Shown here piece after piece: positions 12,209 to 40,096 of a stretch of 64,000 nt of DNA. Every line of letters begins with the position of its first letter. Position 1 is the first letter of the stretch. The DNA is from Podarcis filfolensis (taxonomy: Eukaryota): assembly GCA_964270895.1 (NCBI GenBank), contig OZ185436.1; one strand, given 5' to 3'. The notes beneath the pieces are model-generated. The model had not been told where the DNA came from. It worked only from the letters and a program-made list of their open reading frames with translations, and searched no databases. The position numbers were made by a program, and so were the translations under genes.

Positions 12209-12297
12209 CTCTGATGAATTAGACTCCGGGCCACAAAATATTAGTCCATAATCAACATGTTAGCCTTTAAGGTGCCATAAGACTCTTGTTGTTCTTG
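12209..12297 (+). mobile_element. Penelope-like element terminal fragment
   Basis: ctctgatgaa...ttagcctttaaggtgccataagactc resembles the reptile Penelope terminus as recalled; a second remnant, taaaggtgccacaagactc, is at 47902-47929. Confidence 0.5.
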
Positions 12298-13299
12298 TGA
12301 ATTCAGTTTCTTAACTGAAGCATAGGATAAATAAATGCTTGACCTGACAAACTGGTTTTAGGAAGCTTATTGAGTGAAAGGCTCTCTTGAGTAATAAAAA
12401 GAGCTCTGGAACTGTGGTGACCCAATACTTGATAAATTCCTAATCTAAATTCAATTCGTGTGCCGATAAGGAAACAAATTTCCAAACTTACATATGCCAT
12501 TTTATGCAATTTTAGCCAAGCTGCTAACTAGGGATATCTCTGCAATAGCTAAAAGACAGGCCATGGAATCTTACTCTTTAGAGGTTTTCAGAAAAGAACA
12601 GGGAAAGAACTTCCTCCCAACTGGCTACTGAAGGTCATAGGCAGAAGTATTTCCAAGGCACAACAGCCCTGTTACCTGGAGGCAACAAGGTGAGAGGATG
12701 GGCTATGTGATTAAATCAGTGCTAAGAGTGTCCCTGTTCTCAGGCTCACAATCTAAAAATACACAATACACAGGAAGGAGGTATATGTATTATTATGGGT
12801 ATGGTTGCAGGGAGCTGACGTTGCTAGTGGAACCAGTGGCTACCTTGCTGATGCAAATTTACTATGCCAAAATCTTTGCTTCAGGTTGCACAGCACCTTT
12901 TCTCTATTCAGGAATGGCACTGGTTGCTTAACATAAGGCTGGGTTTCCCTTTGTTGTGGAAAGCTACTCCCATCCTCCCTGATCTGGCTGAGGTGGTTGA
13001 GAGTTCTGTATCCCTGCTGCCCATTCTGGCTGCCCTGACCTCCCTCCCTGTGTTAGTGGCTGGGTCCCCCACCAAACTCAAAAACAGAACAGGGCAGTCA
13101 GCTATTCATTGACAAGGGGAAGAGGTTGGCCACCCTGAGAAGAGTATGCTGGAGTAGGCGGGTCATGGGCTTCATCCAGCAAGCTGTTGTGGAAGCTTAT
13201 TTCCCAAAGATGGAACAGAAAGGGGGCATCCTTATGTCTTCCCCCACCCTGTATTTTCATGCAGAAAATTAAATCCTGGTGTTCCTCACACACCTCGAG

Positions 13300-14200
13300 G
13301 CACTGATATAGATAAGCTCCTCAGGCCCTCCTGGCACGTCGCTGTCAGTCACGTCCACAACAGCGACTGTGCCTACTTATTGTCCGCCCAGCCCAGCCCA
13401 GCCCCTCGCTCGAGGAGAGGAAGTCGCCAGGTGCCTGCGAGGCTGAGGCAGCCGCCTCCTTCCCTCAGCGCTTCGCCGGCCGCCCAGAGAAGTTGGCGGG
13501 GTGGGTGGAGCCGGGGTGGAGGCAGCAGCGCCTCGCTCCATTCGCCTCAGTAGTGCCGGCGGGCGCGTCGTTTCTCTTGCGCAGCGGCGGGGCGGGATCT
13601 GTGCCTTCGGCGAGCCCTTCACAGCCTCTGTCACGCTCCCGGCTCCCGCTCTGGTTTCCTTCGGCGGCGATGAAGTGAGCTGGAGACTGAAGCTGCTCCG
13701 TTTTCGCTCAGCGCTCAGGACCGAGGCGGGATGATCCTCACGCGTAAGTGGCTTCGCCTGGGGGAAGTTCTGGCAGCGAACGAGGCGCCTTCAAACGGAG
13801 AGCGGGAGTTTGGGGAGACCGAGGAGCCGCAAGCGCCACGCAACAGGGAGGGGGTTGTTTCTCGGGAAGGGGCTGCGGGTTTTGCCCGCGGAGGACGAGA
13901 GGTTTTCCCAGACTCGAGGAGGATTTTGTGCCTGGGTCGGGTAGTTGCCGAGCTTGGCTTTTCGCTTGGGGTTGGCTGGGTTATTTGAAGGGGTTGAAGT
14001 TTGGGGAACGTACAGGTTTGTTTGCGCGCATGTTGAACACAAACGCGACCCCTTTTTTTTTGCAGCGGGGCGGGGTAAGATACTAGTTTCAGTAAATATA
14101 ACGCACATTGACTGCAGAACGTGTTTTAGGAAAGATGTATGCCGTTAATAGTGTTGTGAAATACGAACTCACTCCAGCATGGTGATCCGGCAGAGATTGT
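13300..14200 (+). promoter_or_regulatory. CpG island / promoter and 5' UTR of the DLC-like gene
   Basis: Abrupt GC- and CpG-rich segment surrounding exon 1, with GC-box-like sequences (e.g. ggggcggga near 13589) and a short (CCCAG)3 run near 13386. Confidence 0.85.
13731..13743 (+). CDS. DLC-like exon 1 (MILT + first base of Q)
   Basis: ATG ATC CTC ACG C|GTAAGT within a CpG island; an in-frame TGA lies upstream at 13671; joins exon 2 to give MILTQIEAKE as in the DLC1 short isoform. Confidence 0.88.
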
Positions 14201-17200
14201 GCCTCGCCGTAAAACAAATCCATCGTCTGCGCCCCGTTTTGTCACGTGTGGAAGCTGGCAGAAGCTGGCTAGCTATCTTTCCTGGAGCGAAGCTTTTGAG
14301 TGAGTGAGAGCGTTTTCTACTTAAGTGAAAGAATAATAATACTAATCTGCCACTGTTGGGCTTCTAAACAGCCCTAACTCAGCTCTGAAGAATGTAGGTC
14401 AGCAGTGGTGGAACATTTAAGGTTAGTTCTCTTTGCAATCCAGACAGTTGGAAAAGGATCCATGGAACTGATTTAAAGCTGAATCTTCACTCTCACACAA
14501 CTATCTCATAAAACCAACGTATGAGGGATGTTCCCACTCCATAGAGACAGAAGTGATGCTAACAAGTTCCCAGTGAGCACCTTTGATATTAGCAGAATGA
14601 AGTGCTGCAACCTGCAATTTTGTACATGGAGGGTGAGACTGAAGAGAAGACCTCCTATTCTAGACCGTATATTCTGGTACCCTCTATCTCAGTGGTTCCC
14701 AGTTAGGGGTCCAGGGACCCCTGGGAGTCTGCAGAATACCCTTGCCTCCCCCAACTATTTTTTTTTGTCATTTTTGCATGGTAATATCACAAGTTTTATG
14801 GTATGTTTTAGCACTGTGTGTTTTTTAAATATATTGGCCAAAATTGGTTTCAAAATCACACCAAAGTAATGATTTTGACCCAGCAATACATCACTCGTTG
14901 CATGAGGAAGAGCAGGGGCAGCCAATTTCAAGGCACTGACTGCCACCACTCCGTCTCCTTCCCCCACCCATTCAATCCCTGTGGCTGTTCCTTCCCTCAT
15001 CCCCATGCCTGATCTCCAATTTCAGACATTGGGATATATCAGAATATCATGATGTTTAACTGCTGATATATCATGATGTTGAAAACCAGATATCGCTCAG
15101 CCCTATGTTTTTTAGCATACCTAAAATCTTTTGCTTATTAGGGGCATCCCAACGTTTTGTTTAAAAAATTGCTTTGCAGAAGTAGCTACCATAGTTGTCA
15201 AAATTTTCAAAAGTAGAGGGTCCGTGGCTTGGCTTTTGAAAAATAAGGGGTCCTCAGTAATTAGCAAATTGGGAACCACTGCTGACTTTTTAGTTATGCA
15301 GTACTTGCAAAATACTTTTCAATTTTACCTTACTATTCTGATACAGTAGGCACCTTGTGAATTGGAGCTCACCAACACCGCTGATGACAATAGTGACTTG
15401 TACTTAACAGTATGGTCATGTGTATGCCAGATTTAGAGCCATACCTTTTTCTTGACACTTTTGTGGAACAGCAAAAATGCTCATGCATGTGGCTATGCAG
15501 GAGGAAACTTACTGCTGCTTCACTCCTCCCGGCCACTGCTGTGTATCCAGAGCTAAGCCATGGTTTGGGTAAGTGAACCTGAGCTTGTGTTTTGCCTCAC
15601 CCAAACAAACCTCAAGTGATAAACCAAGCACAAACCTTGATTACAACTTATGGTTTGCTATGGCTTCCATGAGACTGGGTCTGAACACAATACTGAGACA
15701 AACCGTAACTATCTTATGGGTAGCAACAAGGCCAGGGGAGGAGCAGAGTGGCAGCAATTTTCTCCCTTAGTACCCACACACTTGCCCCTTCTAAGTCCTA
15801 GTTTGACTTAGCATTAAATTTGAACCAGACCATTCTATGATAGTCTGAGCATAGATTTAAATGAAGAAATTCTTCATTAAGACATGATGTGGCATCCAAA
15901 GGATAGTTGGTTGAGGTTCATTCAACTTTATTATGATTTTCATAGAGACATATATGCAATAAAATAAGCTTATCTGTCTGAGCACAGTATGTGAAAACAT
16001 TTATTTTTGGGAATAGGTGCTTTATTTGAAGTACTAATAAAATTAATAGGCAGCATGTCCTTGCCTTACTGTTAACTCCCCAGCTGCAGAGACAGCCAAG
16101 AACAAGAATGATACAACAGAAGGCTGCACAAAGGGTCTTGTCAGAACAGTTGCTGATGGGATAGACTCTGGTTCTATAGGTAATGTGCATTTCAGTGTGT
16201 GACATCTGGCTTCTGCAGCTGTCAGGCAGATAGATCCCATGCATATTGACTGGTTCTGGAGCAGATGGAGGGCGTTGGAAGAAGAACAATAGAGTTAAGT
16301 TTCCAAGAACAGGAGGAGTAGGAGGCAAAACATTAGTTTAGTTCTGGGGCAGTTTGCTTTTTATTCTTCAGAACTAGCAAACACAATGTTTTGTTTCGTT
16401 TTTAATTGTGTTAGGCTTTTCGTTTTGCTGCCACAATGACATTAGTATGCAAAAGCGAACACCTACAAGTATTGGTACAAATAGTAATGGGAGCAAAACT
16501 ATCTTAATGTATTTTTTTTCAAAGCTGGGAATCTTATTCCAATGGTAAAACATAGGATTTTAGTGCCAGTTCTATATAAAATGTTTAGATTATTGAAATG
16601 TGGTGTTGTACATGCAGCTACCTGTAAAACTCTATGGAAGATTCAGTTAGTCCAAAATAGGGCTGCAAGGTTGTTAACTGGGATTGGACTTCTACCTTTG
16701 GTTATTGCTTTTAGCCAGGTTACTTCCCATATGTTCCTTCCTGGACCTTGAGGTGATTATTAGTAACCTTCTCCCAAGTGTCACTGCCAAGTGAGGTCCC
16801 GTAAGTGACTATGAGTCAGAAGGGCCTTCTCTGTGACCACCCTGGTTGCGAAATGCTTATCCCCAGTGAGGCTTCTCTGAGGCCCGCTTTGTATTTATTT
16901 TGGCACTAGGCAAAAACATTTATTTCCCAAGCTTTTAATGGGTAGTTTAGGACCTTTTTAAAGTTTTGAGGTCATGACTGTCTAATTTGCCATGATCTGT
17001 GGTGTGTTTGTATTTTTATTGTAATTGTATTTTAATTTAGCTAGATCTAGACTTTGAATGGAAAGGCTTGTGATCTAGTAGAAGAAGCCTGCTGATGGAA
17101 TGGAGAGTGAAACAACATTTGTTTACTCCCCACCCCCTTTACAGCCCTTATGCCCCACTAAAAATATGCTCTGTAGGGGTTGGGGGATTCTATGCAATAG

Positions 17201-20200: not shown

Positions 20201-23200
20201 ATCACTAGGGGCACTGAGTAAGTAAAGCTATTATACTCAATGCCACCAGCTTAGACGCAACTGCATGTCAAAAGCATCTGTTGTATGCTTGGATACTCAG
20301 AATGAGATATGTGTATGAAGAGTACGCCGATCAGAAGGTCGGCGGTTCGAATCCCCGTGACGGGGTGAGCTCCTGTTGCTTGGTCCCTGCTCCTGCCAAC
20401 CTAGCAGTTCGAAAGCACGTCAAAGTGCAAGTAGATAAATAGGTACCACTCTGGCGGGAAGGTAAACGGCGTTTCCGTGAGCTGCTCTGGTTCTCCAGAA
20501 GTGGCTTAGTCATGGTGGCCACATGACCCGGAAGCTGTACAACGGCTTCCTCGGCCAATAAAGCGAGATGAGCGCCGCAACCCCAGAGTCAGTCACGACT
20601 GGACCTAATGGTCAGGGGTCCCTTTACCTAACTATTAAGAGTACAGGCAACCCCTGGTTTAGGCGAGTCCAAATGATGTATGCCAAACCCAGAAGTATCC
20701 CCAAAATGTCATAAAAACGCCATGAAAAGGGGCAGAGTAGACTCATGCACTCTGCCGACGCACCTGGGGATCTGGAACACAAAACGAGGATTGCCTGTAA
20801 TATATTAAAAGGTAGGGAGGAAAGAAAACGGGTTGCTTTAAAGATAGTAGCATAGCTTAACAATGGTTTGTTGTTGTTGTTGCTCAGTATTGGAAAGCAA
20901 AACTTAATTTGTGTTCTTTTTTGTTTTGTTTTTAATTGCAGAAATTGAGGCCAAAGAAGCCTGTGATTGGCTGAAAGCTGCTGGCTTCCCCCAATATGCT
21001 CAGATGTTTGAAGGTACTACTTCACCCATGGCGTTCTGAGATGCAGAATAATTGAAAAGTATTGGCAACATGTTCCTTCCCTTTATAAACAGCCCCTCTT
21101 GTCGTCCAATATGCAGTCAGTTATAGGGAAATATCTAACCAGTTCATGGCTGACAAGGCCATCAGTGGCTACTAGCCATGGTGGCTGTGTTCTACCCTCC
21201 ATTGTCAGAGGCATTATGCCTCTGAATACCAGTTGCTGGGAATTGCAAGTGGGCTAAGGGCTGCTGTGCTCATGTCCAACTTGCAGGCTTCCCACAAGCA
21301 AACTGGTTGGCTTCTGAGAGAAGAAGATGCTGGGCCATTGGCTTGATCCAGCAGGCTTGTCTTATGCAAGCTTATTCAAGTTTATTTGTGTGCAGTGGGC
21401 AATTGGAACATAAAACATTTTATTATCTGCTAATTATGCTGTTTTAAATGTGCATTTTACATTTGACTTTCTTCTGTAATGTTTGCTTCTGGACTGTTTT
21501 ATTTGATTTTTTAATGTAGGTTGATTTTTTAATGTAGGTTGTGAGATTTTTTAAAATCAAAATATAAAATGATCTAGAAATGAACTTAGTGATAGACTCT
21601 TGACAATGTTATGAGTCTGTTTTGCATTATCTGCTTGTTCCTATCTCTGAGTAGACAATGGAGATAGAGATTGAGCATCTAATAATCAGTGGCTATGTTT
21701 GTAGGTAACGCTAAGCATAATCACAGATTAGCATGAATGCTGGGGAGGAGATTGCACCTACTTTGCACCTCTCTGGTCACTTTAGCTCAGTGATGACTTA
21801 GCATGTTGTCTGAATCCAGGGATGTGGTTAAGCTCTCTCCTCCTTAACCACAAGCTGCAGCTGAGGTTGCTTCTTGTCTTAACAGCCATGTCTAGCTGAA
21901 AGGACAAGGTAGGCACAAAGTGTGTGCAAGGTCCTCTCTGGGAGCTAGTGCATTTCTGCTGTCTTGGTAAGCCATAGTTTGCTAGGCCAGTGTTTATTTC
22001 CTTCATAGAAGATTTTGAACCTTTTTTGGTTAAAAATGAATCCTATCAGCTGGCAAGCTGATGGTGTGTTCATTTATAAATCTATGCTTTCTTCCTTGCA
22101 GAGATTGAGACCATTTTGAGTCTGGCAGCTGTCACTATAAAAAACCACTGCTTGGGGAGTTTGTTTGTTGTTGTTGTTGTTTTGTATTTTTATTAGAGAT
22201 TTTCTTGATTTACAGAAGTGGGGGGTTTGTTTTCGAGCTGATTTAAGAACTTGTGAAATTAATCCCCCTCTCAAAAAAATAATCATTTACCATTGTGAAC
22301 TCTGTTTTGCAGATATGCAGTTTCCTATTGACATCAAAACTGTCAGAAAAGATCATGAGTTTTTAGACCAAGATGCAATAGAATCCCTATACAGGTAAAC
22401 TTTGCTCTGAATTAAATAGATGTGTATTTAGATTGACAACCTGAGGCTTTAACTAAGTCAGTGGCTGTATCTTACTAGTTTCCTGTTTGGCTGTCTGAAG
22501 ACAGGCACATTACTATATAATTATTAGAATATTTGTAAGTAGTAAGAACTGCTATATGGCTGTACAAGTCTTCGAAGGGCTTTTTCTTTTGAAAGCTAGG
22601 ACAATTCCACACATACAGTGTTGCTGTCATGCTGTTGATTGCCTCCAAATCAACCTGGGTTTGCTCATGCATTATCCTCTAGACTGCCTAGGAATAGTCT
22701 TGTATCTTGTATGAACTGAAATAACAATTATTATTATTAATTTTATATACTACCTTTCATCTGAGGATCACAAGGCAGTTTACCATATAAAAACACAAAA
22801 ATGCATAACATAGTAACAAATAGAAACAATAGCCCTCCACAGTGTAAAAGGCCATAGATGGTTTAATTAGCTTGGGGAAAGAAGAATGATTTTGTTTTGT
22901 GACTAAAGATACTTCTGTTTTTGGATTGTTGGCTTTCTGAGAAAGTTAGTAGGTTATTTTAGAATGCTATTTTATATGTTATATTGCAATGGACCAACAC
23001 TGACTCCACCTCACATCCCTTATCTACTGACTTCCTTTATTTTACCTACACTAAGGAAGATCCCTCTCCCCCTGAATTCTAACTTTTCAGGGTGCCTAAT
23101 GTTTAGGAATAATCTGACCCAAACTACAGTGAATAAAAGTAGCAACATTTGCAAAATTATGAACCCTGGAATTATTCTCAGAAAGAGCTTTGGTAAGATG

Positions 23201-26200: not shown

Positions 26201-29200
26201 TGGGTGTAGGAGGAACAGGGTTCAAAAGGGTTCTCAGGAGCCTGAAACGCCACCTGGCTCCCTTTCATTGATGGATAACAGACTGAGCATATATGACAAT
26301 GTGCCAGGCAATCATCTAAACAAAATGGATACACCAGAGGTTGGTGATGATGATGTTTTTACAGAGCTAGACAGTGTTATGGAGCATGTCAATGGACTCA
26401 GGAAGTTGGTCAGTCAGTGGACAGAGAAATTCTCTGATGATGGGGACTCCGACTCTGCCAGTCCTTCCAACCAGTCCATCTCTCCTTGCCCATCATCCCC
26501 TAAAGAGATCCGTCTTGAGACTGAAAAGCATTCAGAAGGGAAATTGCCAGAATTGTCAGTTACTGACAGTGAAGGGAACTGCAATGAACGTGGCCTCACA
26601 GAACTGGCATATGTAACAGAATCGAGGATGAGACGGACATTGGCACATTCTATCAGGTCAGCTATATACTGGTTGAAGTGGCAAAGAATTAAAAATGAAA
26701 TTTGGCTGGGGTTGTCATTGTAAGGGGTTAATCAGTTGAGCTTAAAGCAGTGTAGCATAAACTTAAGCTGAAGTAATGATTTAATAGTGAAGATAATCTG
26801 GCTGAATAACTTGAGGTTTTGATTATTGAATGCTGCAGAACTTGGTCTCTAAAGTACAGTGTTCTACCTTTCACAAGGTATTTTGAAATTCATAGTGATT
26901 TTCTGTGGGTGTGCAGCTTTAGAGAGACAATAGTAATACTGAAGAGCACTGAAACAAATGTGGTTTTTTTCTCTCTTTAGACATGTGAGGAGACAATGGT
27001 CTACTGAGGAAGGCACAAATTTGGAAAGTCTTTCTCAGCAAATTGACTGCCAGTCAGCTGCCCACCTAAATCGATTGCAGAAGCTTGCTTTGTTAAAATT
27101 GACTACTTTAATGGACAAATACTCTCCTTCCAGCAAGCAAGGATGGAACTGGTAAGTTAGAATGAAGTGGAAGTGTTTCTGAAGTGAAAGAACTACCTTA
27201 GTCTTGAATTGGAAATTGAGCCTGACCCTATATGCTGATTTTCAGAGCAAATCCCTCCAAAGGAAACTTACAAAAGACAATTAGCTTCATATACATTAGC
27301 AGGAACATGGTGCTTTCAGTTGATTTACAGTACCAGTCCACTTGCAATGCTTCTAGTACAGGACCCCAATGATTTCCCTTTTACTTATCCCATCTGTGAC
27401 CCTTACTGCTATCCACCAACCCGAGCTGTTCTCGAGCTGTATGCCTCCTTCCCCCGCCCACTTCATTTCATGTTCTAGATGGTTCAGTTCCTCAAGTCTG
27501 TGAAACTTCTGCTGTAATTGCAGAAATATTTTAGACTTTTAGCAGCACTTCCTTTCAGGTAATGATTAGACTTGTCTTGACTTTCTGTCTTGTGTAATGG
27601 GCAGTAATTCATCAGGTCATGGAGCTAGTTCTAAACATATATCTTCTGATGGTCTCAGCTGGTCTCAGAACTGTGTGCAGGTATGATGGAGGTGTGCCCA
27701 AATGCTTCTCTGTCTCCTGATAACCTCTGATTGCATTAGCAATCAAAACTCAGTGGCATAAATTTTAGAAAATGTATTCTGGTCCTCAAGGCATCTGTAG
27801 GAAGTTGCCTGTATGTAATTCTCTCATCATAGTGTCCCTGTTTCTCTGGCTAACCAGGTAGAACTCTCTACGGAATCTTCAGTATGTTTATGCTGATGTT
27901 TTTGCTTACAAACAAGTATATTGGGGTTTGCAAAATTTGGGGGAATAAATTGGCTGAGGATTGCAATAGAAGAAGGGCAGCAGGAGATAAAGAGCAGGAA
28001 ACTGGAGGGCGGATAGCTGTGCAGTAAGTAGCTGTACTTCAGCTTAAAGAAACTGGTATTTCATATTTGAACAGTATCTTGTTTGGCATAACAAATACTA
28101 AAGTAAAACTTCTATTGGGATGCCACATGGCTAGCATTGGCAGATGCAGCAGCTCCAATGGTATGTTTCTTTTTCCATTGTTTTGGTAAATACTGCTTTC
28201 CTTTCAAACTAATAAGGGTTAGAATTGTTAATTGTGTCCTCCTGATACTTTTTGTATTCTATAAATGAATTCAGTGTATCTACCCCACCTGCCTGATATG
28301 CATACCCAGCTCAGGGCATAAATCTGCATAAGCAAATGAATTCTGTATTTTCAGGACTGTTCCAAAGTTCATCAGAAAAACAAAAGCACCAGACTATAAG
28401 GACAAAAATGTATTTGGAGTACCGCTGCTGTTAAATGTGCAAAGAACAAGTCATCCTATTCCAAAGAGCATACTCCAAGCCATGGACTACTTAAGAGACA
28501 ATTTTCTTGATCAGGTATCAGTATGAAAGTTTATACTGTATTAAATAGGAAAAAGCCTTTCTGTTACTAATATGAGCAAATGTCTTATAATATTTCCCCT
28601 TGTGGTGGTTCTTCCACCCCTTCAAAACTTAAGCAGTTTTCTTTAAATGGGGTAAAGCTTTATTTTACTCACAAAACACTCATTATCTCCATATACTTGC
28701 AACAATTTCTTATGCTGAATTTATGAAGCTTTGCTCATAATTTTTCATCGCCCTGGCCGGCTCTCAGCCCTCTATTTATTAGAGCCTCTTATTCTGATTT
28801 TGTTTACGTACACACATATGCCAATAACATTTGATGTGTTTGGCTTGGTATAGCTGCAAATTCCTTATTTTGGTGGGGTTGGGGGACCCCTGAGTTTACT
28901 GTTCTAATGGTCTGGAATGCTTATGTGCTGGAAACAAAAACAAAAAAAAGGGATACAAGGCGAGGGGTTGGGGCAGAGTAACACTGGGACTGCTGAGGCA
29001 GACATTTTCATCACTCAGAGCCTGCATTATCAAGCAACAACTTGCTTGTAGGTGACTGCCATCATAGTCCAGACACCATAAACACGACTCTCTTTAGCAC
29101 TTTACATCACCTCCAACCTGCTGAGTGACAATATAGTGTGTACAATACTGCAGATGAAAGGATCTGTACATGTAACAAGGAGAGATTAAAGATGCATTAT

Positions 29201-29860
29201 CAACATTCTTTTTACATTTTCAAACGAAATAATCTCTCCCCCCCCCCCCCCGTTTCTTTTATTGCGCATATATCAAAGTGCCTTTGAACATAGTACAATC
29301 AAAAGTGCCTAGAAAGCTTGTGGATATGTAACCACATTAAGAGTTCCATGCCACAGCCAGAGTCAAAGGACATTATTCTGCAGATTAAATGTTTACTCTT
29401 TTTGTTGTTGTTTTTCATAGGTTGGCCTTTTCAGGAAATCTGGTGTGAAATCCAGGATCCTTTCCTTAAGGGAAATGAATGAAAATGACCCAAACAATGT
29501 AACTTATGAGGGACAGTCAGCATTTGATGTGGCAGACATGGTGAAGCAGTATTTCCGAGACCTTCCGGAACCTATATTCACCAGCAAGCTCTGCGAATCC
29601 TTCCTCCATATCTACCAATGTACGTACCTGCTGTTGTTTTAATTCTGGTTGGCTATTTTAGACATTGATTTTATAAGTGGAATGTAATTTTGCTTTGTTA
29701 GTTTAAGTGTGCCTGATGCTACTTAGTTTGATTATCAATTAATTCAGTTTCTTAAGTCAGAGGTCAAGGGACAAATGATGTAGGAATATATTTTTCTTTC
29801 TTTAAAATAGTCTCTAAGATGAGCCTTCTTCTTCTTCTTCTTCTTCTTCTTCTTCTTCTT

Positions 29861-29891
<31 letters not shown>

Positions 29892-32800
29892 AAATTTGTA
29901 TACCACAATATACATGTAGATCTCAGGGCAATTCACAACATAAAATTGCAATATAAAAACACAGAATACATAATAAAAATACAAACAAAGACAACCCAAT
30001 AATCCCCTCTACTGCAACACATTTAAAGGGCACCAGATGTCAGCTCAAAGCCTGGTTATAGAGGAATGTTGTGTGCCTGATGCCTAAAGATGTGTAATGT
30101 AGGCATCAGCCAAACCTCCCTGGAGAGAGCACTCCACAAGCATGGAGCTGTTCAGAAAAAGCCTGTTTGGTATGTGTGTTTAAGTTTCTTCCCTACTGTA
30201 TTAAAAGTAAATGGAAACTACATTGTACTCAAATAATAAATGTCAACTCTTTTTGTAAGAAGATACCCTAGTTCCTGATCTTGGCTTCCATCTTTTTCCC
30301 CTCTCTAGATCTGCCAAAAGATCAGCAATTTTATGCTGTCCAAGCTGCTGTTCTTCTGCTTCCAGATGAAAACCGAGAAGCTTTGAAAACACTGCTATTC
30401 TTTCTCAGAGATGTAGTGGCTTTTGTGGAGGAAAACCAGATGACTCCAACCAACATTGCTGTTTGTCTAGCACCATCCTTGTTTCACCTTAATACCCTGA
30501 GGAGAGAGAGTTCCTCATCGTCTAGGTATTTTTGCGTGAACAATACTTGCTTGCTGATGAGCAGTGAAGGAAAATACATTGTACAAATGTAAAGGTGCTT
30601 CAAGTCAAGTCACCTTTTTATATGGCATAAGCACAGTATTGCCTTTTTACTTGCTTACGGTGGTCATTTCTTTCAAGTGTAGGTTTCTTTTAGCCAATTT
30701 GTGCTGCTTTAGCTGAGTTCAGGTACAAATCATAGGTCTGTGAGGTTTGGAATGCACCTTATTTCAGATGTTAACAACTGTTAATGGCTGTTAATTGAAT
30801 ATGGCTGTCCTTTTTAATCATGGTGTGATTAAAAAAAGAGTTAGCACTGCCAGAATGGACAGTAGATAGAGAAAATACCCCCTGTACTGTTTGGATATTT
30901 GGTGAGTAGCTGCCTAAGGATAGCTAAAGGATTTTATATCACCTGTTAATATTTAAAAATCATAGCAGTGCTGATTGTTAGGGGACAAAAATAAGTAGAT
31001 CAAGAATGGGAAACCTGTGGTCCTCTAGGTGTTGGTGGAATTCAACTCCCATCAGCCCCAGACAGCCTTGTTAATGGCCAGGAATGATGGGAACTTCAGT
31101 TGCCTCAACATTTGGAGGACCACAGGTTTCCCCCCCCCCAGTAGTTTGAAAGCTTTTTCTCTGAGAAAAAATTCATTTCCTGACAATAGTTAGTGTATGT
31201 TGACCTCCATTTAAACGTTGGTTTCTTGCAGAGGGGTGAGTGTGTGGGGTTTTGCTTATGGCTATTCCAGACATTCTTACTCTGGAGGACCTTTTAGCTT
31301 TATTATACTCATCAAGTTAACCAGCGATAAGCACTATACTGTCCTTCTCTGAATGTATGTACTTTCCTAAGATGCTGTTGTTATTTTACCTCATAAGTAT
31401 AGCAGCGCTTCAGTGTAGCTTCATGCCATACATGGCTCGATAACGCAATAACACAGTGGTCCTGGGCCAATTACTTCCTGGGCCAGTATGCTCCCACCTT
31501 TTAAAAGAGGTAGCACAGGGGTGGGAAGTAGCGACATAACTGGCGGCTCCCACAAGAGATTTGTGACCAGAGTAGTGGGGGAAGCAACCCCATGGTGAAG
31601 TAACAGCACAAAACGGGATATTGGACTGCATCCCACAGGGCTATACTTCCAACGTAACATTTCTGTAGAGGCAACCAGAAAAAGGTGGCAGACATTTTTT
31701 TTTAAAAAATATGGGGGTAGCTTTGGATCAGCCTGAAAAGACCAGGGTGGTTTAGCAGAGACATACATCTCAAAGAGGCTTTCAAGAAGTGAATGAATCT
31801 CAGTTTACTGATCCCCATATATACCTAAAGTGTAACTTTTTCATCTCTGCTACAGTGAGATGTAGATGCTGTCTCTGCATTTGGGGAGCTTGCCAATCCC
31901 CACATGCAGCAATCCCCACAGTCATTTAGAAAGTTGACTGGGAGTCAGGTTTAAAATCGTAGAAAAATAGTACTGTGGGTACAGAAAGTTGCATCAGTAC
32001 CATCACTGTACCAGAGGCCTGTTCATGATGAAATGCATATACAGTCATACCTCGGGTTAAAGTCACTTCGGGTTAAATCTTTTCAGGTTGCGTCCCGCGG
32101 TGACCTGGAAGTAATGGAACGGGTTACATCTGGGTTTTGCTGCTCGCGTATGCGCAGACGCTCAAAATGATGTCACATGCATGCACAGAAGCAGCGAATC
32201 ACGACGCGCAGATGCGGGTTGTGTTCTGCTCAGGATGTGAACAGGGCTCCGGAACAGATCCCGTTCTCATCCAGAGGTACCTCTGTACTAACTAATAGGA
32301 AAAACTGTACTTGAGCAAGAAGCATTCTTTAGATTGTGTGAGTTGAATGTCTGTGGCAGGTTAATGCCATTAAGGCTGCAAATTCTATTTCATGAGTGGG
32401 GGTGGGAAGCTTGAAAAAGTATCTGCATGTTTTAGGATGATAGCTCAATCTTTGAGAGAGGTGAAGAGAGGTAAAGCATGTGAAGAATGTGCTTTTAAGA
32501 AGAGTACGCATCCCAGATGCGTATCAGGCTATAAAACAAGTCCTGTGATGCTCAGCATTCCCCAGAGAGAGAGAGAGGAATCTAGAACTGAGATGATGAC
32601 AGCATTGTCAGTCATAAGAGAGTGAACACATAATCACAGCCAAGAATGTGTCAGAAGAATTGATTGCAAAATAAAATGCTAAATTCTTAATTCCAGGTGA
32701 AGAAACTTATATTTTGGAAGTTTAGAACTTTTAGAGGAGGAGGCCTCTACCATCCGACTTTGCTTTGAGCTCTGTACTACAGCAGGAGCAGCTATCTTAA

Positions 32801-35800
32801 GAAAAGAGGGAGTGCTTGTCTTTTCTCCCTCTCCCCACCCCACCTCATTGTTTTAACAGCAAGGTTGCTTTGAATGGGAAATTTGGATAATAAATTTGCT
32901 AATATTTTACTTTCAGTGTTGGGACTTCAAAAGGACCTAATCTAACAGCTTTGGCTTCAAGGATTAAAGTCAAGCATCTTTATCTAACAACCTCTTTTAA
33001 AAAACCATTCACAAAGAATTTTCCAAGATAAAGCTATTAGAGATGAATGCCAGGCTCTTGGCAATCCTAATCTTGGCATGATGCCACAAATAAGCTTAAA
33101 ATATGAATTAATGCTCTTTGGCAAAGCATTTGGAGCTCTTAAATAATGTGATTGGCTTTCCCTTAGACTTTCTGGGCCAGCCTTTAATTAAACACGTCTA
33201 ATGATAATAGGCAAATCAATGAGAGCTTTGTGTGCGCCTTTGAATGAAATGTACCTGACCAGGATTGGTTAAAGCATACTCACTTAACAGGACTCATTAC
33301 AATTAAAACGTCTATTTTTAAAATATATTTTATTAACATTTCCAACATGAGTAATAAGCACAGAACAGAGAGTAAACTGTAGCTCGTGCATTTCAAAAGA
33401 AATAATCACATCCAGTAACAAGAAAATTTGATATAGTAACAGAGATAATAGTGGTTACAATTGAATAAGAAGTCCAACTGGATACCAAGAGAGTCTGTCC
33501 AAAACAATGTGTGTACATTTGGTGGTGAAGGTTTCTTGCTCATAATTATGACTGGAACTACAAATTTGAACATTGGACAGAACACTCCCTTGGGAAGTAC
33601 TTTATATCCTATGCTGTATTTCTCAATGACCTACTTCTCAATGAGGTAGTATTCCTTGTGTCTGAACTACAAGAAGGGGCTTGTGAGATTAACAGTCTTC
33701 CTGTCTCTTGTGATGTTTGGGAAAATTAGTGTTGTGCAACAAATGTCAAAAATATGGCAGGCAAGTGCACAGGACACTAACCTGCTCCATACATAATGCT
33801 AAGGTACGGTTTGTGTTTTTACCAAACTGTGTGTAAAAATCGCTTAGTGTTATGTGGTAGAACAACCTGCGGTTAACATTCACCATAGTTTATAAACCAT
33901 AGTTGAAGCTGAAATGTCTGACAGATAATCCCTTAATCCATGGTTCATTATGTCACAGAATAATTAAAAGCACCAAAAAAAGCAACTGAGCCATTTGAGT
34001 TACAGTGGTACCTCGAGTTAAGAACTTAATTCGTTCTGGAGGTCCGTTCTTAACCTGAAACTGTTCTTAACCTGAGGTACCACTTTAGCTAATGGGGCCT
34101 CCCGCTGCCACTGCTGCACTATTTCTGTTCTCATCCTGAAGCAAAGTTCTTAACCCAAGGTACTATTTCTGGGTTAGCAGAGTCTGTAACCTGAAGCGTC
34201 TGTAACCTGAGGTACCACTGTATTTGAATTTTTGGCCATTCTTCACTTGTGGCTGTGCAGCTCATTGGGCAGTGACAGCTCCATGACCATAGTTGAGGGA
34301 GTTCAGGTTAACCTTTGGTTAACATTAAAAATGCACCACAAACCTTAGATATTGAGAGACCGCTTACAATACTTAATAAACCATAGTAAGCTATGAGGCT
34401 TGGTTCACATACAGCGCCAAGCCATGGTTTAATAAAACTTTTTTTTTCCTTGGAAGAAATTCAGTGTTGTGCTTTGGCAATAATTTCATTAGCACAAGCT
34501 GTTCAGCTTGCTGGATAGGATGATCCTCCCTCCCTTCTTCCTGCACACTTTTCTGGGGGGTATTTTAAGGACCCACCCCGAGCCAGTCTTGCGAGGGCCC
34601 TGGAGGAGGAGAGGGGGAACCTTTGTGTGGGCTTCTGATAGCAGGACTATTTAGTTGAACTCTGTCCTCTGAAGTATGTTTTGTTTTCCATTGCTCTTGC
34701 CTCCATTCATTTGTAGTTTGGTGAGCTTTGGTGTGAAGTTGTTAAACTATGGCTAAGAAAGTATACTGGGTTCATATATGACACCAAGCCATACTTAAAA
34801 CAAACCAAAGTTTGTAAGCCAACAGCAAACCATGGCTTCAGTTCATGGTTTATTGGACTGCATATAAGCTGCTGGGCAGGGTTAAACATACTAAAGTTGT
34901 TTAATAAACCATGGTTTAGCATTATGTGCAAACTATCTTTTGAGATGCAGCCTTCAGGGGTCCTGCCCAACCTATTATCTGTTAATTTTTTAGATTGTTG
35001 GTGGAGATTATCTTATACTAGAGGGCTGTCACTGTTTAGATTGACAACAAAGCATGCCACAGAACCAGGAGCAGTTATTTTACATTTCTATCCCTCCCTT
35101 TCACCTGCAGTCTGAAGTGATAGTGTCCTTACCAGCTACATTGTGTGATTTGAATAAGCAGCCCTTTGTATTCTTCTCCTTAGGTCAAGCCAGAGGAAGC
35201 ACAGTACAGGAAAACCTGACCAGAGAGACCTGAGTGAGAACCTGGCTGCAACTCAAGGCCTGGCCCATATGATAATGGAGTGCAACAGACTCTTTCAGGT
35301 AAGTTGCTTTCTTCAGGAAGAATCGCTGCTTAACTTCTTTGGCATCCTCCATCCCTCATGCTGCTTAGAAACTTGTGTAGTGGATACTTTGTTGGTTTGA
35401 AATCAGAACAGCAGCCCTTTTCATTGTTGGCAATAATGAAAAGCAGATGTTGGACCAACTCTTAATTGGTATTCATTAGTATACCTCTCTAAACAAGCAA
35501 AATTTACTTTCTCTTAGTTCCTTGATAGCAAAGGAAAGTTTGCATTTTTATTTTGAGCTAGCTTGCTGGTGACAGCAAGTGCCTGGCTATTTTGATTCTT
35601 TGATTTGCTACTTTCTGCCACCCTTGGTTTCTTCTTGGCTTATGCTAAATATGGGCTTAGAAATGCCTTATGGTGTGGATGTGACTCAGCCTGTCCTTTT
35701 TTGAGGGGCAGCACCCATGTTAAGCATGAAACCAACAGAATACCACTTTCTACGTTGATCTAAAAAGTTGTTAATGATGAGGGAGAAGTGTGAGTTTTCC

Positions 35801-38800
35801 AGTCTCTTGTTTGAGCACAGCATGACCTTGGTTATGCCCATTTAGTCCTGACTTGTAGGCCCACTGGAATCTCTTCTTCCTGCATTACGTTGTTTGCATC
35901 TTGTGTGTGGGAGTTTGACCTGCTTAGCGTGAGGCCAGAGCTGGGAAGGGTGAAGAATGTGTGGCATTTGGGCCTTCTGACCACTCCTCTTGGCAGCACT
36001 TGAGCAGATATGAACTAGTGCCAAGATGCCCTTCCACTCTGGCATTGAAATTACTTGTTGGAAAGGCCTGGTGAACAGGGCTTTCGTGCATGAGGCGGGA
36101 GAGTGGCTTTTAATCAATTGAGATGTTCCAGTCATTCTTGCTTCCTCCCTTGTCTTTGACCTTGTTTTGTGGCATGAAGTGTGTGGGAAAGGGATAAAAA
36201 AAAACAGAAAAGCAAGAAGGGGAGGGTGAGGAGGAAACTGCAGAGAAAAGAGGATGGGAGGGAGAGGCCACTGACTATTTGTGCAGCCTGCTGGGCCAAA
36301 ATTAGACTCAATAGTTCAGGCTAAACGTTAGTGTGAACTTTTTCTGCTTTGGCACAGGGAGCTGGCAGTGACTTTGTTAAGAGCTAGGAGCAAAGCCCCA
36401 AAGAGTGCAAAGGTTGATATACTATTTGTTCAGCCTCACTTTTTGGAGAATGGCAGCTTAGGTTCCTTCAAATAAGTGTTTTATATGTATCTATGTGGTT
36501 CCCACAAACTGAGTACTCAAAAATCCTTTCCTCCCTTTTTGTCTTAAGTTATGTGTTTGATTCATACATAACTGTAGAAGCGCTATATTGTAGCATTCAG
36601 CATCAAAAAACCACATTCCCACTCTGCTTGCGCCTTGATGGGTGACTGTGTGACAATTGTGTGTATACTGTTCTTGAGCTCCTTTACAGGAAGCCTGGGA
36701 TAAAAGTGTAATAAATACAGTGGAATATATTGGGATATCCATTTCTTATGACCTATGCTTCCTAGCAACTAATTTCTAGTATTCTTCTGCAGATTCCTGA
36801 CTACTGTTTGGATCACAGTTATGAAAATTTACATGATCAAACTATCTCCAGTGAAGTAGATCCACACCAAACCTCCTTAGCAAAGCACTGTAACACAGTG
36901 GTCTCCCTGGAGCGCTCCATGCAGGACTTGCTCCGAGATGCCAAGGAAAAATTCAAGAACTGGGTTACTTGCTCCACCTTAGAAGGAGTGGATTCTGCAT
37001 ATAAAAAGGTAATTTTGGCATGAGAATGTTAATGAGGCTCAGAGTAAATGAGTTTTAAAATGACATTAATACATGTGTATTCTGTGAAAATAACCAGTTA
37101 AGAGTATCTTGTCCCATTTGCAAATAACCTCCCCCTGAGAAATAGGTCACACATTAATTAGAAAAGGTATGGCATGGAGCACAAACGTACTGAAATGCCA
37201 CCATAGTACTGTTTCCCAAACTGGGGAAAAAAATTTTTTTTTTGAATATGTGGATAGTCACTTTAGATGCTGTGATATGACATCCATAGCTAGCAGGACC
37301 AGAGGTCAGAGGTGATGGGAGTTGTAGTCCCCAAACAGCTGCAGACCCAAGTTTGGGAAACCATGTCTTAATGGATTGAGGGACCATGTTGACTCCAATT
37401 CCAGGGGTTCTACAGCCATTGGATCCCAGGTTGCTTTTGGCAGACTCAAATCATTTCCTCATGGATTAACTGTCTTCTAAGGTGGATGATAACTACTTGG
37501 TCCGGGTATGGAAAGCTTCAGCTGAAATTGATGCTGCCCCTAAAGTGGTTCTATATCGGATACTGATGGAACAGCACCTATGGAACCCAAACCTTCAACA
37601 AACAAGAGTCCTAGAAATCTTAGATGATGAAACAGACATTTACCACTATGCAACGGAGAGCATGTCTCCACTTCCTCCACGAGAATATGTGGTTCTAAGG
37701 TAAGGAATCTACAATATTCCTGTCTCTGCCATCTGCTGTAATTATGAGATGAGCTGCAGCAGAGGTAATGACTTGACTTAACCTTAGTTGAATATTATTT
37801 TTATACATACAGCTGAATACCTTGATCATGTGCAGAGCCTGGAAGTTGATGTAAATGAGCTGTTACAGTTGATAGCATGGTTGATAAGCATAATGGCATA
37901 TTGATGATAGCCAATGAGATTATTGATTTGACCTTTTGTTTCCAGGACTTGGCGGACTGATCCTCAAAGCAGCACATGCATATTAGCAGCTACCTCAATA
38001 GACTGTGAAGGTGTTACCATGACGGGGATCTTGGGTCAGGTCCTACTTTGTCAGTATCTTATAGAAGTAGTTGGCACTCAGAAATCCAAAGTCACACATG
38101 TCTGTCGAACAGATACCAGGTATCTATATTTATTTTATTTAGAGTGGCTTGACATAATAGATTAGATTCCAAGTGCAATAAAGGTCAAGGGCTTGCTAGA
38201 GGAATAAGATTCACGTATGAAAAACTGGCATTTGGTTTGTGAATTGGCTGGCCGCTTGTTATACGTCACTGCACAAATTGTTTTGCTCACTGCTACAGCT
38301 GTTTTTTCAGATGTACAGAAATGTGATAGAAGCTTTGATTGCAGTCTTTTTAGTTAATAATGATTAAGTTCTTCTTTAATGGCCACATGTGCTTCAGGGG
38401 TGTGTTGTAAACATGCAGTCAATACAGTGGTACCTCTGGATGCAAACAGGATCCGTTCCAGAGCCCCGTTTGCATCCTGAGTAGAGCGTAACCCGCGACT
38501 GCGTGTGATGTCATTTTGAGCGCATGCGCAAGCGGCGAAACCCGGAAGTAATGTGCCCCGTTACTTCCAGGTCCCCGCAGAGCGCAACCCTTAAATACTT
38601 ACCTCGGGTTGAAATAGCTTCAGGTTATGACTAGTTTTATAGCACTGGTGGTGGAAGAGGAATGCCTAAAATGAAGGGTGGATTTAAGTGTTGCACTAAT
38701 AGCATTTCTGCTTGCCAGATGGAACAATCTGTACTCTCCTCCTCCCCCTGTGCACTGTTCTGTGGGTTCCCCAGAGAGATTTTGGGGGAGACATGGGGTG

Positions 38801-39018
38801 GAAACCCTTGTTGGAAAGCACTTTGCTGGAAAGCACAGTTAGCTCAACCTGGCTCAATAGTCGGGAAGAGAAATCTTTTAAGACTTTAGTTTTTTTAACA
38901 GGCTGTTTCCTTTATTGGCAGGGGCCGCACAACTGAATGGTACAACAGGGCTTTTGGTCACATGTGTGCTGCAGAACTGGTAAGGATTAGAGAGTCATTT
39001 AAAACTTCATCATACTGA
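13731..39018 (+). CDS. Rho GTPase-activating protein 7-like gene (DLC1/STARD13/STARD8 family; SAM-RhoGAP-START), 14 coding exons, 3150 nt, ~1049 aa
   Basis: Exons: 13731-13743, 20942-21013, 22313-22394, 24311-24374, 25305-26656, 26981-27151, 28355-28514, 29421-29619, 30309-30525, 35184-35298, 36793-37008, 37482-37699, 37946-38119, 38922-39018. All introns are GT-AG with compatible phases, and the sum is divisible by 3. Translation starts MILTQIEAKEACDWLKAAGFPQYAQ and contains RLSIYDNVPG, VGLFRKSGVKSRI, NQMTPTNIAVCLAPSLFHLN and a START domain, all matching the DLC family. No symbol is given because orthology to DLC1 itself is doubtful. Confidence 0.95.
14690..15281. mobile_element. hAT/Charlie-like non-autonomous element with a nested fragment of a TAGGG-TIR element (15020-15104)
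   Basis: CAGTGGTTCCCA...TGGGAACCACTG TIRs; TSD is poor (4/8). 15020-15104 matches the 3' half of the 57451-57724 element. Confidence 0.65.
15480..15700. repeat. Interspersed repeat rich in (A)AACCATGGTT(T) motifs; related copies at ~33780-33960, ~34390-34930 and ~51130-51440
   Basis: Shared gctaagccatggtttg / caaaccatggcttagc motifs between the loci; probably an old DNA-transposon family; boundaries approximate. Confidence 0.45.
16600..17040 (+). mobile_element. L2-clade LINE 3' fragment (decayed ORF2 end and 3' UTR)
   Basis: ORF-track peptide KTLWKIQLVQNRAARLLTG resembles the L2 ORF2 motif LQLVQNAAARLLT; followed by a T-rich tail. Confidence 0.65.
19342..19368. repeat. (ATT)n microsatellite
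   Basis: Direct reading. Confidence 0.9.
20326..20629 (+). mobile_element. Sauria SINE, 5'-truncated
   Basis: gccgatcagaaggtcggcGGTTCGAATCCcc (B box at 20344-20354), ctgccaacctagcagttcgaaagca core, and an ACCTTT-type tail; diagnostic of squamates. Confidence 0.9.
20942..21013 (+). CDS. DLC-like exon 2 (SAM domain start)
   Basis: ttgcag|AA ATT GAG GCC ... TTT GAA G|gtac; encodes IEAKEACDWLKAAGFPQYAQMFE. Confidence 0.95.
21150..21366 (+). mobile_element. L2-type LINE 3' fragment
   Basis: ggctactagccatg...ctgaataccagttgctgg...gggccattggcttgatccagcaggct..cttatg. Confidence 0.65.
22313..22394 (+). CDS. DLC-like exon 3 (SAM domain)
   Basis: ttttgcag|AT ATG CAG ... TAC AG|gtaaac; encodes DMQFPIDIKTVRKDHEFLDQDAIESLYR. 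Confidence 0.95.
24311..24374 (+). CDS. DLC-like exon 4 (SAM domain end)
   Basis: ttccag|G CGT TTG AAT ... AAG AGG|gtatgt; encodes RLNTLNKCTAMKVEISRQRKR. Confidence 0.93.
25305..26656 (+). CDS. DLC-like exon 5 (large serine-rich linker / focal-adhesion targeting region)
   Basis: taag|AGT GAT GAA ... ATC AG|gtcagc; 1352 nt open, in frame with the ORF-track hit 25566-26723. Contains SDESEEDEPCAIS, FLKRMEKLRL, HKPGTFPKAL, VNWRTGSFHG, RLSIYDNVPG, SDDGDSDSA and SPCPSSPK. Confidence 0.95.
26981..27151 (+). CDS. DLC-like exon 6
   Basis: ctttag|A CAT GTG ... AAC TG|gtaagt; encodes QIDCQSAAHLNRLQKLALLKLTTLMDKYSPSSKQGWN. Confidence 0.95.
28355..28514 (+). CDS. DLC-like exon 7 (RhoGAP start)
   Basis: tttcag|G ACT GTT CCA AAG ... 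GAT CAG|gtatca; encodes TVPKFIRKTKAPDYKDKNVFGVPL...LDQ. Confidence 0.95.
29421..29619 (+). CDS. DLC-like exon 8 (RhoGAP, arginine finger)
   Basis: tcatag|GTT GGC CTT TTC AGG AAA ... CAA T|gtacgt; encodes VGLFRKSGVKSRI; catalytic Arg codon at 29433-29435. Confidence 0.96.
29826..30150 (-). mobile_element. L2-type LINE 3' end with a (TTC)n microsatellite tail (29826-29890)
   Basis: A pure (TTC)n run abuts aaatttgtataccac...tctcagggcaattcacaacataaaa, the reverse of an L2-type 3' end. Confidence 0.65.
30309..30525 (+). CDS. DLC-like exon 9 (RhoGAP)
   Basis: ctctag|AT CTG CCA ... TCT AG|gtattt; encodes LLLPDENREALKTLLFFL...NQMTPTNIAVCLAPSLFHLNTLRRES. Confidence 0.96.
31008..31132. mobile_element. 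hAT-like foldback MITE
   Basis: gggaaacctgtggtcctc...gaggaccacaggtttccc inverted arms. Confidence 0.65.
32042..32285. mobile_element. Tigger-like MITE, subfamily B
   Basis: TA|CAGTCATACCTCGGGTT...GAGGTACCTCTG|TA. Confidence 0.85.
34003..34220. mobile_element. Tigger-like MITE, subfamily A
   Basis: TA|CAGTGGTACCTC...GAGGTACCACTG|TA. Confidence 0.9.
35184..35298 (+). CDS. DLC-like exon 10 (RhoGAP end)
   Basis: ccttag|G TCA AGC ... TTT CAG|gtaagt; encodes GKPDQRDLSENLAATQGLAHMIMECNRLFQ. Confidence 0.95.
36793..37008 (+). CDS. DLC-like exon 11 (START domain start)
   Basis: ctgcag|ATT CCT GAC ... AAA AAG|gtaatt; encodes LLRDAKEKFKNWV...SAYKK. Confidence 0.93.
37482..37699 (+). CDS. DLC-like exon 12 (START)
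   Basis: ctaag|GTG GAT GAT ... CTA AG|gtaagg; encodes VWKASAEIDAAP...EQHLW...VLEILDDETDIYHY...REYVVLR. Confidence 0.95.
37946..38119 (+). CDS. DLC-like exon 13 (START)
   Basis: ttccag|G ACT TGG CGG ACT ... ACC AG|gtatct; encodes TWRTD...QYLIEVVGTQKSKVTHVCRTDT. Confidence 0.93.
38425..38633. mobile_element. Tigger-like MITE, subfamily B (reverse orientation), in the last intron of the DLC-like gene
   Basis: TA|CAGTGGTACCTCTGGATG...; right end degenerate (caggttatgactag); contains GCGCATGCGC and CCGGAAGT. Confidence 0.8.
38922..39018 (+). CDS. DLC-like exon 14 (START C-terminal helix and stop)
   Basis: tggcag|G GGC CGC ACA ACT GAA TGG ... TAC TGA; encodes GRTTEWYNRAFGHMCAAELVRIRESFKTSSY*. 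Confidence 0.9.
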
Positions 39019-40096
39019 GAGCAAGCCAAAGATGACATGGTGCTTTTGGAAGTTAAATCAAATGTGTGGTGTCCAAAGCTGAAGTTTACCAGACTTCATT
39101 ATCGTAATTGAAGCATTCTAGAACTGTAAAGACATTTTTATGCATTTTATAATGTTACTGCTTTTTTATTAAAAAATTCTACTGAGAAAATTAAATTGTT
39201 CAATATTACGTATCAAAATAAGTTATTGAAAAATGAACATCTTGATGTTCTAATAATGTATAAAGATGAGATTTTATTTCCCCCCAGATGCTTTTTAAAC
39301 TAAAAATGTGAGAACAAATGTGTAATATTTTAGCAGTGCTATTTGACTAAAGAAAACTCCGCACCTGTGATGTCTTTTTCTGTTTTTAGCATTCTAAAAT
39401 AATGAATATAATGAATATAATGATCATATAGGAAGCTATGCTGTATTTATTGGTTACAGACATTTGTACTTTCTACAGTGAAGAAACAATCAGAAAAAGG
39501 GCTTCTTTTTTCAGTGGAACTGTGTGTTCCAGCACCTCTCAGCTGGGCCCCGGAAGTGGGTGGGGGTGAGAAACTTGACCTGCACCTTTTATGGGCTCCA
39601 GAAAATTGCAGGAGGCCTGTGCGGAGGTTCTTCAGCCTTCTAACTGGCAGGGGGAAGCCACTTGTGTGAGGTGGGGGCCTTGTTAAACTGTTCCACTGAG
39701 GTGCAGGCAGCTGCGCCCCTCAGCGGAACAGTTTCAAGAAGGCGCCCACCTGTGCCTCAGCTGCCTTTGCACAGGCAGGCAGTTGGGACACCTCTTGCTC
39801 CTGGGAGGAAGAGGTGGCCTGCCCGTTGCCTGTGTGAAAGCAGTTGAGGCAGCCCCGCCAACAGAGCAGCCTCTGGCTCGGGAAGACACATATTTTGAAC
39901 TTCAATTTGCAGTACACTGCTGTTTTGGAAATGGAAAAAAAAGGGGTCGTGGGGGTGGGAGGGAAAAGATAATATATTGATACTACTGGTACTTCCAGAA
40001 TATATATGATACTTTTAAGTCTGTACATTCATTGCATTTCCTAAAATACTGTAATTTAGTGTCAATTGTGTTTATAAGCTCAGACAATATACCTTT

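Follow-up and report, generated by a model that had tools for sequence, protein, structure and literature searches.

As regulators of Rho and as tumour suppressors, the DLC genes have been studied intensively, and the papers that we found describe them as a family of three genes. A 64,000-nt stretch of contig OZ185436.1 from the lizard Podarcis filfolensis (assembly GCA_964270895.1; the whole stretch is called the window here) carries at 13731-39018, on the + strand, a DLC-like gene that lies tail-to-tail with RARS1, the gene of arginyl-tRNA synthetase. Which member of the family is it? A first-pass annotation had read it as a probable fourth ohnologue that is intact in lizards and missing beside RARS1 in mammals. 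Based on the analyses described below, the gene is in our judgement very probably an ancient fourth DLC paralogue, which arose before the gnathostomes as the sister of DLC1, is linked to RARS1, lacks the START domain in the birds examined, was not found among placental proteins and would have a function of the family type.

Position of the gene in the DLC family

The orthologues of the window gene carry automatic names, 'rho GTPase-activating protein 7-like' at NCBI and si:dkeyp-23e4.3 at Ensembl/ZFIN, and we use DLC4 or L4 as a working name for the clade that they form. In a careful maximum-likelihood (ML) tree of 55 proteins and 1045 columns, computed under LG+C20 with posterior mean site frequencies (PMSF), 1000 ultrafast bootstraps and the Shimodaira-Hasegawa approximate likelihood ratio test (SH-aLRT), the window gene falls within L4, which is supported at 100/100 and whose stem measures 0.35 substitutions per site. 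Branching inside L4 mirrors that of the species: chimaera and sharks come first, followed by ray-finned fish, by coelacanth and lungfish, by amphibians and by monotreme plus marsupials, with sauropsids last. Its sister is the true DLC1 clade (98/95), which is itself supported at 100/100 and contains sharks, skates, osteoglossomorph teleosts, the lizard Elgaria and a bird. In the other pair (100/99), STARD13 (100/100) is joined to STARD8, and the vertebrate DLCs, including the window gene, are separated from the invertebrate outgroup at 100/100. A faster ML analysis with 81 proteins, rooted like the first on the DLCs of amphioxus, acorn worm and echinoderm, is concordant and gives the L4 clade an SH-aLRT value of 100. 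When the window gene is constrained to group with the DLC1 clade, the tree is worse by 614 log-likelihood units and is rejected (approximately unbiased (AU) test, p = 2.9e-216). The fourth clade and this test bear out the earlier view that the gene is no orthologue of DLC1, STARD13 or STARD8.

Both sister genes occur within single genomes: Heterodontus, Leucoraja, Rhinoraja and Elgaria each carry one L4 and one DLC1 gene on different chromosome-scale contigs. L4 adjoins RARS1, whereas DLC1 sits at its own locus, on another chromosome in sharks, skates and Elgaria. The duplications post-date the split from the invertebrate chordate line, since amphioxus, acorn worm and echinoderms have a single DLC gene. 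The DLC1, L4 and STARD13 clades each hold cartilaginous and bony vertebrates, STARD8 having been sampled in sauropsids only. Lampreys and hagfish possess at least two or three DLC-family genes (P0392/P0036, P0037/P0064 and P0071), with long branches and a deviant composition.

The position of L4 beside RARS1 is old as well. In flanks of at most 10 kb per orthologue, a convergent arginyl-tRNA synthetase gene (660-661 aa) was found 1.1 kb downstream of the orthologue in the echidna, 2.9 kb downstream in the golden eagle, 3.3 kb in the cloudy catshark and 5.1 kb in the spotted gar. This pairing, common to the window and the four other species, therefore predates the split between cartilaginous and bony vertebrates. 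The flanks of L4 in three marsupials and one frog and of DLC1 in one skate showed no called neighbour within 10 kb, a flank length that is uninformative in these cases.

Both the two-pair topology and the date of the duplications agree with an origin in the two rounds of vertebrate whole-genome duplication (2R). The alternative that survives best is a small-scale duplication (segmental, or tandem and then moved) before the gnathostomes, in which case L4 would not be a strict ohnologue. This reading is unlikely, yet it deserves to be weighed, because the flanks seen at each orthologue reach no further than 10 kb. The topology ((DLC1, L4), (STARD13, STARD8)), the single invertebrate gene and the placement of all duplications before crown gnathostomes together make up the classic 2R pattern and argue against it. 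So does the human map: SLC7A2/SLC7A1/SLC7A3, ZDHHC2/ZDHHC20/ZDHHC15 and MTMR7/MTMR6/MTMR8 link 8p22, 13q12 and Xq11-13, and SGCZ/SGCG/SGCD together with CDX2/CDX4/CDX1 tie 5q32-34, where RARS1 is located, to the 8p22/13q12/Xq set. The map positions at 8p22, 13q12-13, Xq13 and 5q32-34 would favour four paralogous copies of one ancestral linkage group.

The taxonomic spread of L4 was taken from protein searches. Exon 5 was searched against 1.84 billion representative proteins, and the database proteins P0001, P0099 and P0058 were then used as queries. The best matches of exon 5 were a bird 'RHG07, partial' (58%) and a sugar glider 'rho GTPase-activating protein 7-like' (47%), with skate DLC1 (46%) and a poeciliid 'si:dkeyp-23e4.3' (representative P0009, 42%) as further matches. 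A marsupial RhoGAP-START query retrieved the '7-like' gene from seven marsupial genera and the echidna; from turtles, crocodile, tuatara and about 20 squamates; from frogs, salamanders, caecilians, coelacanth and lungfish; and from sturgeons, bichir, bowfin, gar, teleosts, sharks, rays and a chimaera. With the Podarcis muralis entry of that name the window protein shares 99.0% identity across 1047 residues, the alternative first exon being the sole difference. The si:dkeyp-23e4.3 name stands on coelacanth, elephant shark, platyfish and medaka entries. Entries under either name form one clade with a common RARS1 neighbour and show no difference of substance from the window gene.

Many L4 proteins of teleosts (P0361, P0372, P0378, P0011, P0367, P0376, P0018 and P0552) bear the plain NCBI name 'rho GTPase-activating protein 7', which stands for DLC1. 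Teleosts also have true DLC1, in Scleropages and Brienomyrus according to the tree and in Electrophorus and Anguilla according to the best match, and automatic naming conflates the two genes. In the searchable literature we found no study that recognizes a fourth DLC paralogue: dkeyp-23e4.3 occurs only in one gene list, 'rho GTPase-activating protein 7-like' only in three papers on other subjects, and DLC4 together with RhoGAP returned nothing. The earlier description of the gene as unstudied holds for the literature searched, but the gene is no new discovery: automatic annotation already lists it in hundreds of genomes under '7-like' or si:dkeyp-23e4.3. What appears to be new is its recognition as the fourth ancient DLC paralogue.

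Gene structure, transcription and first exons

From the three + strand frames and the splice sites at 13-40 kb, 14 exons were assembled, all with GT-AG introns. Their coding sequence of 3150 nt starts with MILTQ at 13731, contains one terminal stop (TGA, 39016-39018) and encodes 1049 aa. Searched exon by exon against Pfam, the gene gave SAM_2 on exon 2 (E 3.3e-4), RhoGAP on exons 8 and 9 (E 4.3e-15 and 1.1e-13) and START on exons 12 and 13 (E 2.8e-10 and 3e-3). Matches to domain structures were read via P0281, a database protein 99% identical to the window protein. Its N-terminal SAM domain matches the DLC1/DLC2 SAM structures 2DKY, 2GYT and 2H80 (E 1e-28 to 8e-27), its RhoGAP domain matches the human DLC1 RhoGAP structure 3KUQ with 333 bits, and residues 888-1079 match the human STARD13 START structure 2PSO with 207 bits. 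The open SAM-RhoGAP-START gene of 14 exons, tail-to-tail with RARS1, therefore stands as first described, supported by frames, splice sites, Pfam and RNA from opposite strands.

The exons, all on the + strand and each delimited by splice sites, follow the domain order. Exon 1 (13731-13743) supplies the ATG and encodes MILT plus 1 nt, a MILTQ-type start that recurs in the annotations of Gekko and further squamates and in one DLC1 isoform of a skate. The SAM domain is spread over exon 2 (20942-21013, with AG/GT sites and the Pfam match), exon 3 (22313-22394, which aligns via P0281 to the DLC1 and STARD13 SAM structures) and exon 4 (24311-24374), where it ends. Exon 5 (25305-26656; 1352 nt), defined by frame, splice sites and motif alignment, encodes a serine-rich linker with the motifs KPGTFPKAL, RLSIYDNVPG and ELDSVMEHV, and is followed by exon 6 (26981-27151). 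RhoGAP begins on exon 7 (28355-28514), which lies within the stretch that matches 3KUQ via P0281. It continues on exon 8 (29421-29619; 94.5 bits to 3KUQ), which carries the arginine finger GLFRKSG (R643), and on exon 9 (30309-30525), which carries MTPTNIAVCLAPSLF. Exon 10 (35184-35298), 90% identical to its eagle counterpart, is the last coding exon common to the START-less bird genes discussed below. Exon 11 (36793-37008) encodes a further linker and the beginning of START, exons 12 (37482-37699) and 13 (37946-38119) encode START sequence recognized by Pfam, and the coding part of exon 14 (38922-39018) encodes its end and the stop codon. The 3' untranslated region (UTR; 39019-40208, about 1.1-1.2 kb) is drawn from strand-consistent RNA depth to about 40.0-40.2 kb, contigs that reach 40208 and a poly(A) signal at 40097.

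RNA of a sister species confirmed the 3' part of this model. Reads from two raw RNA-seq runs, together with two RNA contig sets, were mapped to 35100-41000, and all four junctions from exon 10 to exon 14 were found at the predicted bases, with GT..AG borders, and each also in transcript contigs. Raw reads in runs 1 and 2, respectively, numbered 11 and 8 for junction 10/11 (35298/36793; in addition to 2 transcript contigs), 5 and 4 for 11/12 (37008/37482), 6 and 10 for 12/13 (37699/37946), and 8 and 9 for 13/14 (38119/38922). Junction 9/10 is supported by loose ends: in 19 reads whose alignment stops where exon 10 begins, the overhang matches the 3' end of exon 9. The earlier suggestion that RNA-seq would bear on the junctions thus led to confirmation of 9/10 to 13/14 in the sister species. 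A 3882-nt RNA contig runs from exons 10-14 into the 3' UTR and includes about 2.6 kb of sequence upstream, and exon 5 is represented in contigs from many RNA runs of the sister species (about 73% of 31-mers in common, for an estimated divergence of about 1%). The strandedness of the reads is opposite to that of RARS1, as convergence predicts. Across 820 coding nt, the sister species differs at six positions, five of them synonymous and one non-synonymous (N>S); in the 3' UTR the divergence is about 3%. The DLC-like gene is transcribed, properly spliced and constrained.

Within introns 11 and 13, two segments (37267-37463 and 38252-38645) are covered by RNA 10-50 times as deeply as the exons; the signal comes from both strands and has many loose ends. 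Presumably, both segments derive from an interspersed repeat that is abundant and transcribed.

These data bear on the notion that the lizard gene is decaying, or an expressed pseudogene. L4 has evolved faster than DLC1 or STARD13 (stem 0.35 vs 0.10 substitutions per site), was not found in placentals and lacks START in the bird genes examined, all of which could be taken as signs of decay. However, 1049 codons are open, the splice sites are canonical and the catalytic motifs intact, stranded and properly spliced RNA is present in several runs with the 5:1 ratio of synonymous to non-synonymous differences, and the protein remains 75-88% identical among squamates, turtles and crocodile. We regard decay in lizards as very improbable.

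The 5' end has a structure of its own. A CpG island surrounds the MILTQ exon (13400-14400, +), with a GC content of 0.61-0.72 and a CpG observed/expected ratio of 0.9-1.2, where the window as a whole has 0.41 and 0.27, and it probably marks an alternative, internal promoter. Other squamate annotations contain a second, older alternative first coding exon of 36 aa, MAYPG...RLS, which in Podarcis muralis reads MAYPGRSHLRRSFSEHIRVSTNKAWDVFWKSAREKRLS. A tblastn search found no match to it within the window; therefore, the DLC-like locus extends upstream of window position 1. With this conserved exon lying beyond the window, positions 1-13700 probably belong to an intron of a longer isoform and not to intergenic DNA. 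The description of the gene as complete is accordingly right for the MILTQ isoform and falls short for the isoform that starts upstream. Shark DLC1 and shark L4 genes each show both types of first exon, the short MILTQ type and a longer M..PLRRSFS...RLS type (the one located beyond the window), so that the two-promoter design predates the duplication. The resemblance to the start of DLC1 pointed out at first holds true, since a skate DLC1 isoform begins MILTQIEAKEAC.

Downstream of the DLC-like gene, RARS1 occupies about 40262-60359 on the - strand, as seen from exon translations, Pfam and opposite-strand RNA at 40262-40453. The domains DALR_1, tRNA-synt_1d and Arg_tRNA_synt_N were recovered (E 1e-6 to 2e-22), and the last exon (40262-40453) ends ...GIKPVQKM; the frames place the stop codon at 40343-40345 and the ATG near 60359. 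As its exons lie on the - strand beyond the DLC-like gene, the two genes are tail-to-tail. Their 3' ends (RNA to about 40208 and poly(A) signal at 40097 for the one, signal at 40262 on the - strand for the other) are only about 50-150 nt apart. The convergent pairing may reflect shared 3'-end regulation.

Comparison with DLC1 and fate in birds and mammals

The likeness between L4 and DLC1 (ARHGAP7, STARD12) is considerable. Both have the order SAM-linker-RhoGAP-START, two alternative types of first exon (MILTQ and M..PLRRSFS...RL), an identical arginine finger, KQYFRDLPEP and MTPTN, as well as SIYDNVPG and LD-like linker motifs. At full length, however, they are only about 51% identical, START of L4 is the more diverged, and signatures tell them apart: PQGHKPG in L4 is PEDHKPG in DLC1, DNRLSIYDNVP corresponds to GSRLSIYDNVPGS.LYSSTGDL, and VMEHVNGL to ILYHVKGM. 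The 1500-aa long isoform, a further contrast with DLC1, was not seen among the L4 proteins sampled. STARD13 (DLC2) and STARD8 (DLC3) have the domain architecture and catalytic motifs of L4 and belong to the other pair of paralogues, at 44% and 40% identity. The single DLC gene of invertebrates (Drosophila Cv-c; amphioxus, acorn worm, echinoderm) is the pre-duplication homologue; its RhoGAP-START core is 54-67% conserved, and its linker can be aligned to that of L4 only at SIYDNVP.

Could a true DLC1, or else STARD13 or STARD8, simply have moved beside RARS1 in lizards? The shared MILTQ-type first exon and overall architecture point that way for DLC1, and the identity of about 51% to lizard and skate DLC1 is close to that between the window protein and some L4 proteins of sharks and rays (52-58%). 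Among the other L4 proteins, identity to the window protein is 74-88% in other squamates, 75-77% in turtles and crocodile, 59-68% in amphibians, 63% in coelacanth, 61% in echidna and 55% in the marsupial Macrotis. A relocation is contradicted by the AU test and by the full support of the L4 and DLC1 clades alike, and RARS1 linkage is not peculiar to lizards, being found also in shark, gar, echidna and bird. Moreover, Elgaria has a separate DLC1 that is nearer to human DLC1, with 436 bits to the human RhoGAP structure as opposed to 333 for lizard L4. The same Elgaria protein scores 290 bits against the human STARD13 START structure, compared with 207 for lizard L4, which agrees with the early impression that the START domain was too diverged for a DLC1 orthologue. 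With identities of only 44% and 40%, STARD13 and STARD8 fare no better as the source, and we give a relocation of any of the three next to no credence. Just as implausible is a young DLC1 duplicate of squamates or sauropsids, which has nothing beyond the '-like' of its database name in its favour, as orthologues with the same neighbour occur in cartilaginous fish (catshark), ray-finned fish (gar), a monotreme (echidna) and a bird (eagle), and as the clade, by its support and synteny, keeps to the phylogeny of the species between chimaera and lizard and extends to marsupials.

We therefore return to L4 as an old gene and to its fate in single lineages. With a bird protein as query, more than 100 bird species, all of those recognized being Neoaves, were found to have an orthologue of about 820 aa with SAM and RhoGAP and without START (P0001, P0146-P0264), whose conserved tail just behind exon 10 reads ...ECNRLFQ-TDFPA. 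At the golden eagle locus (L002:17163-33268), exons 1-10 are present and no START exons were found in the 2.9 kb before RARS1; a relic of exon 11, 18 aa long and 67% identical, lies at L002:32760-32813 (E 0.014). Because the crocodile keeps START, the loss occurred on the bird line.

Within mammals, the claim that the gene is absent beside RARS1 fails: in the echidna a mere 1.1 kb separates the gene from RARS1, and the gene persists intact in seven marsupial genera. The marsupial stem measures 0.48 substitutions per site, as compared with 0.23 for echidna (P0002, P0100, P0267, P0270), and in Dromiciops the orthologue is nested in the range of a PPDPFL-like gene. A relocation, or relaxed or changed selection ahead of the loss in placentals, may underlie this marsupial pattern. 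In the marsupial-query search, the first placental match was sloth STARD13 (516 bits). Judging from the proteins, the gene appears to have been lost whole in placentals, where the loss of single 2R paralogues is common.

Predicted function and significance

The motifs of L4 suggest what its protein does. GLFRKSG (R643), KQYFRDLPEP and MTPTNIAVCLAPSLF are invariant across the clade in the motif alignment, and MTPTN, SIYDNVPG and KPGTFPKAL are also conserved. The linker of the clade keeps two motifs: residues 404-412 form the tensin-type RLSIYDNVPG, and residues from about 431 to 439 form the LD-like ELDSVMEHV. Most likely, the L4 protein acts like other DLCs, as a Rho-directed GTPase-activating protein (GAP) that is recruited to adhesions. 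In the model that we propose, a single gene gave rise to both L4 and DLC1 earlier than the last common ancestor of jawed vertebrates, and L4 has stayed tail-to-tail with RARS1 since. Its product would be a Rho-specific GAP that uses the arginine finger R643, would be targeted to focal adhesions through SIYDNVPG and ELDSVMEHV, and would carry the N-terminal SAM and C-terminal START as regulatory modules, with transcription presumably driven from at least two alternative promoters.

Several points weigh against this explanation as a whole. The co-occurrence of L4 and DLC1 rests on other genomes, Podarcis filfolensis not being among them. STARD8 is represented by two sequences only and the cyclostomes are placed loosely, so that the exact order of the two duplication rounds is provisional. 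Linkage to RARS1 is not universal, since the 10 kb downstream of the orthologue contained no called RARS1 in three marsupials. One protein-database search, with no placental DNA searched, returned no placental L4 protein above paralogue level. Finally, the GAP specificity and focal-adhesion targeting of the clade are predicted from motifs alone.

The finding has limits in its reach: the mechanism is that of a known family, and the gene was already in the databases under its automatic names. Nevertheless, the RARS1 pairing seen in lizard, bird, monotreme, ray-finned fish and shark offers a clean synteny marker. Taken together, the data allow a broader proposition, which we advance only tentatively and rate slightly below an even call: that non-placentals such as zebrafish, Xenopus, chicken and opossum have four DLCs, and that the fourth, sister to DLC1 and locked to RARS1 since before cartilaginous and bony vertebrates split, has been dismantled stepwise, through the loss of START in the bird genes examined (with SAM and RhoGAP kept under constraint), accelerated change and possibly a moved locus in marsupials, and apparent loss of the whole gene in placentals. 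If this is true, knock-out studies in fish and frog may have met with hidden redundancy and mislabelled 'dlc1' genes. Because a fourth, expressed sister of DLC1 could act redundantly, loss-of-function phenotypes in zebrafish, Xenopus, chicken and marsupials would need to be reread. The START-less birds and the placentals without a detectable copy are natural deletion variants, and they would amount to a natural experiment on the need for the START domain and for the gene as a whole.

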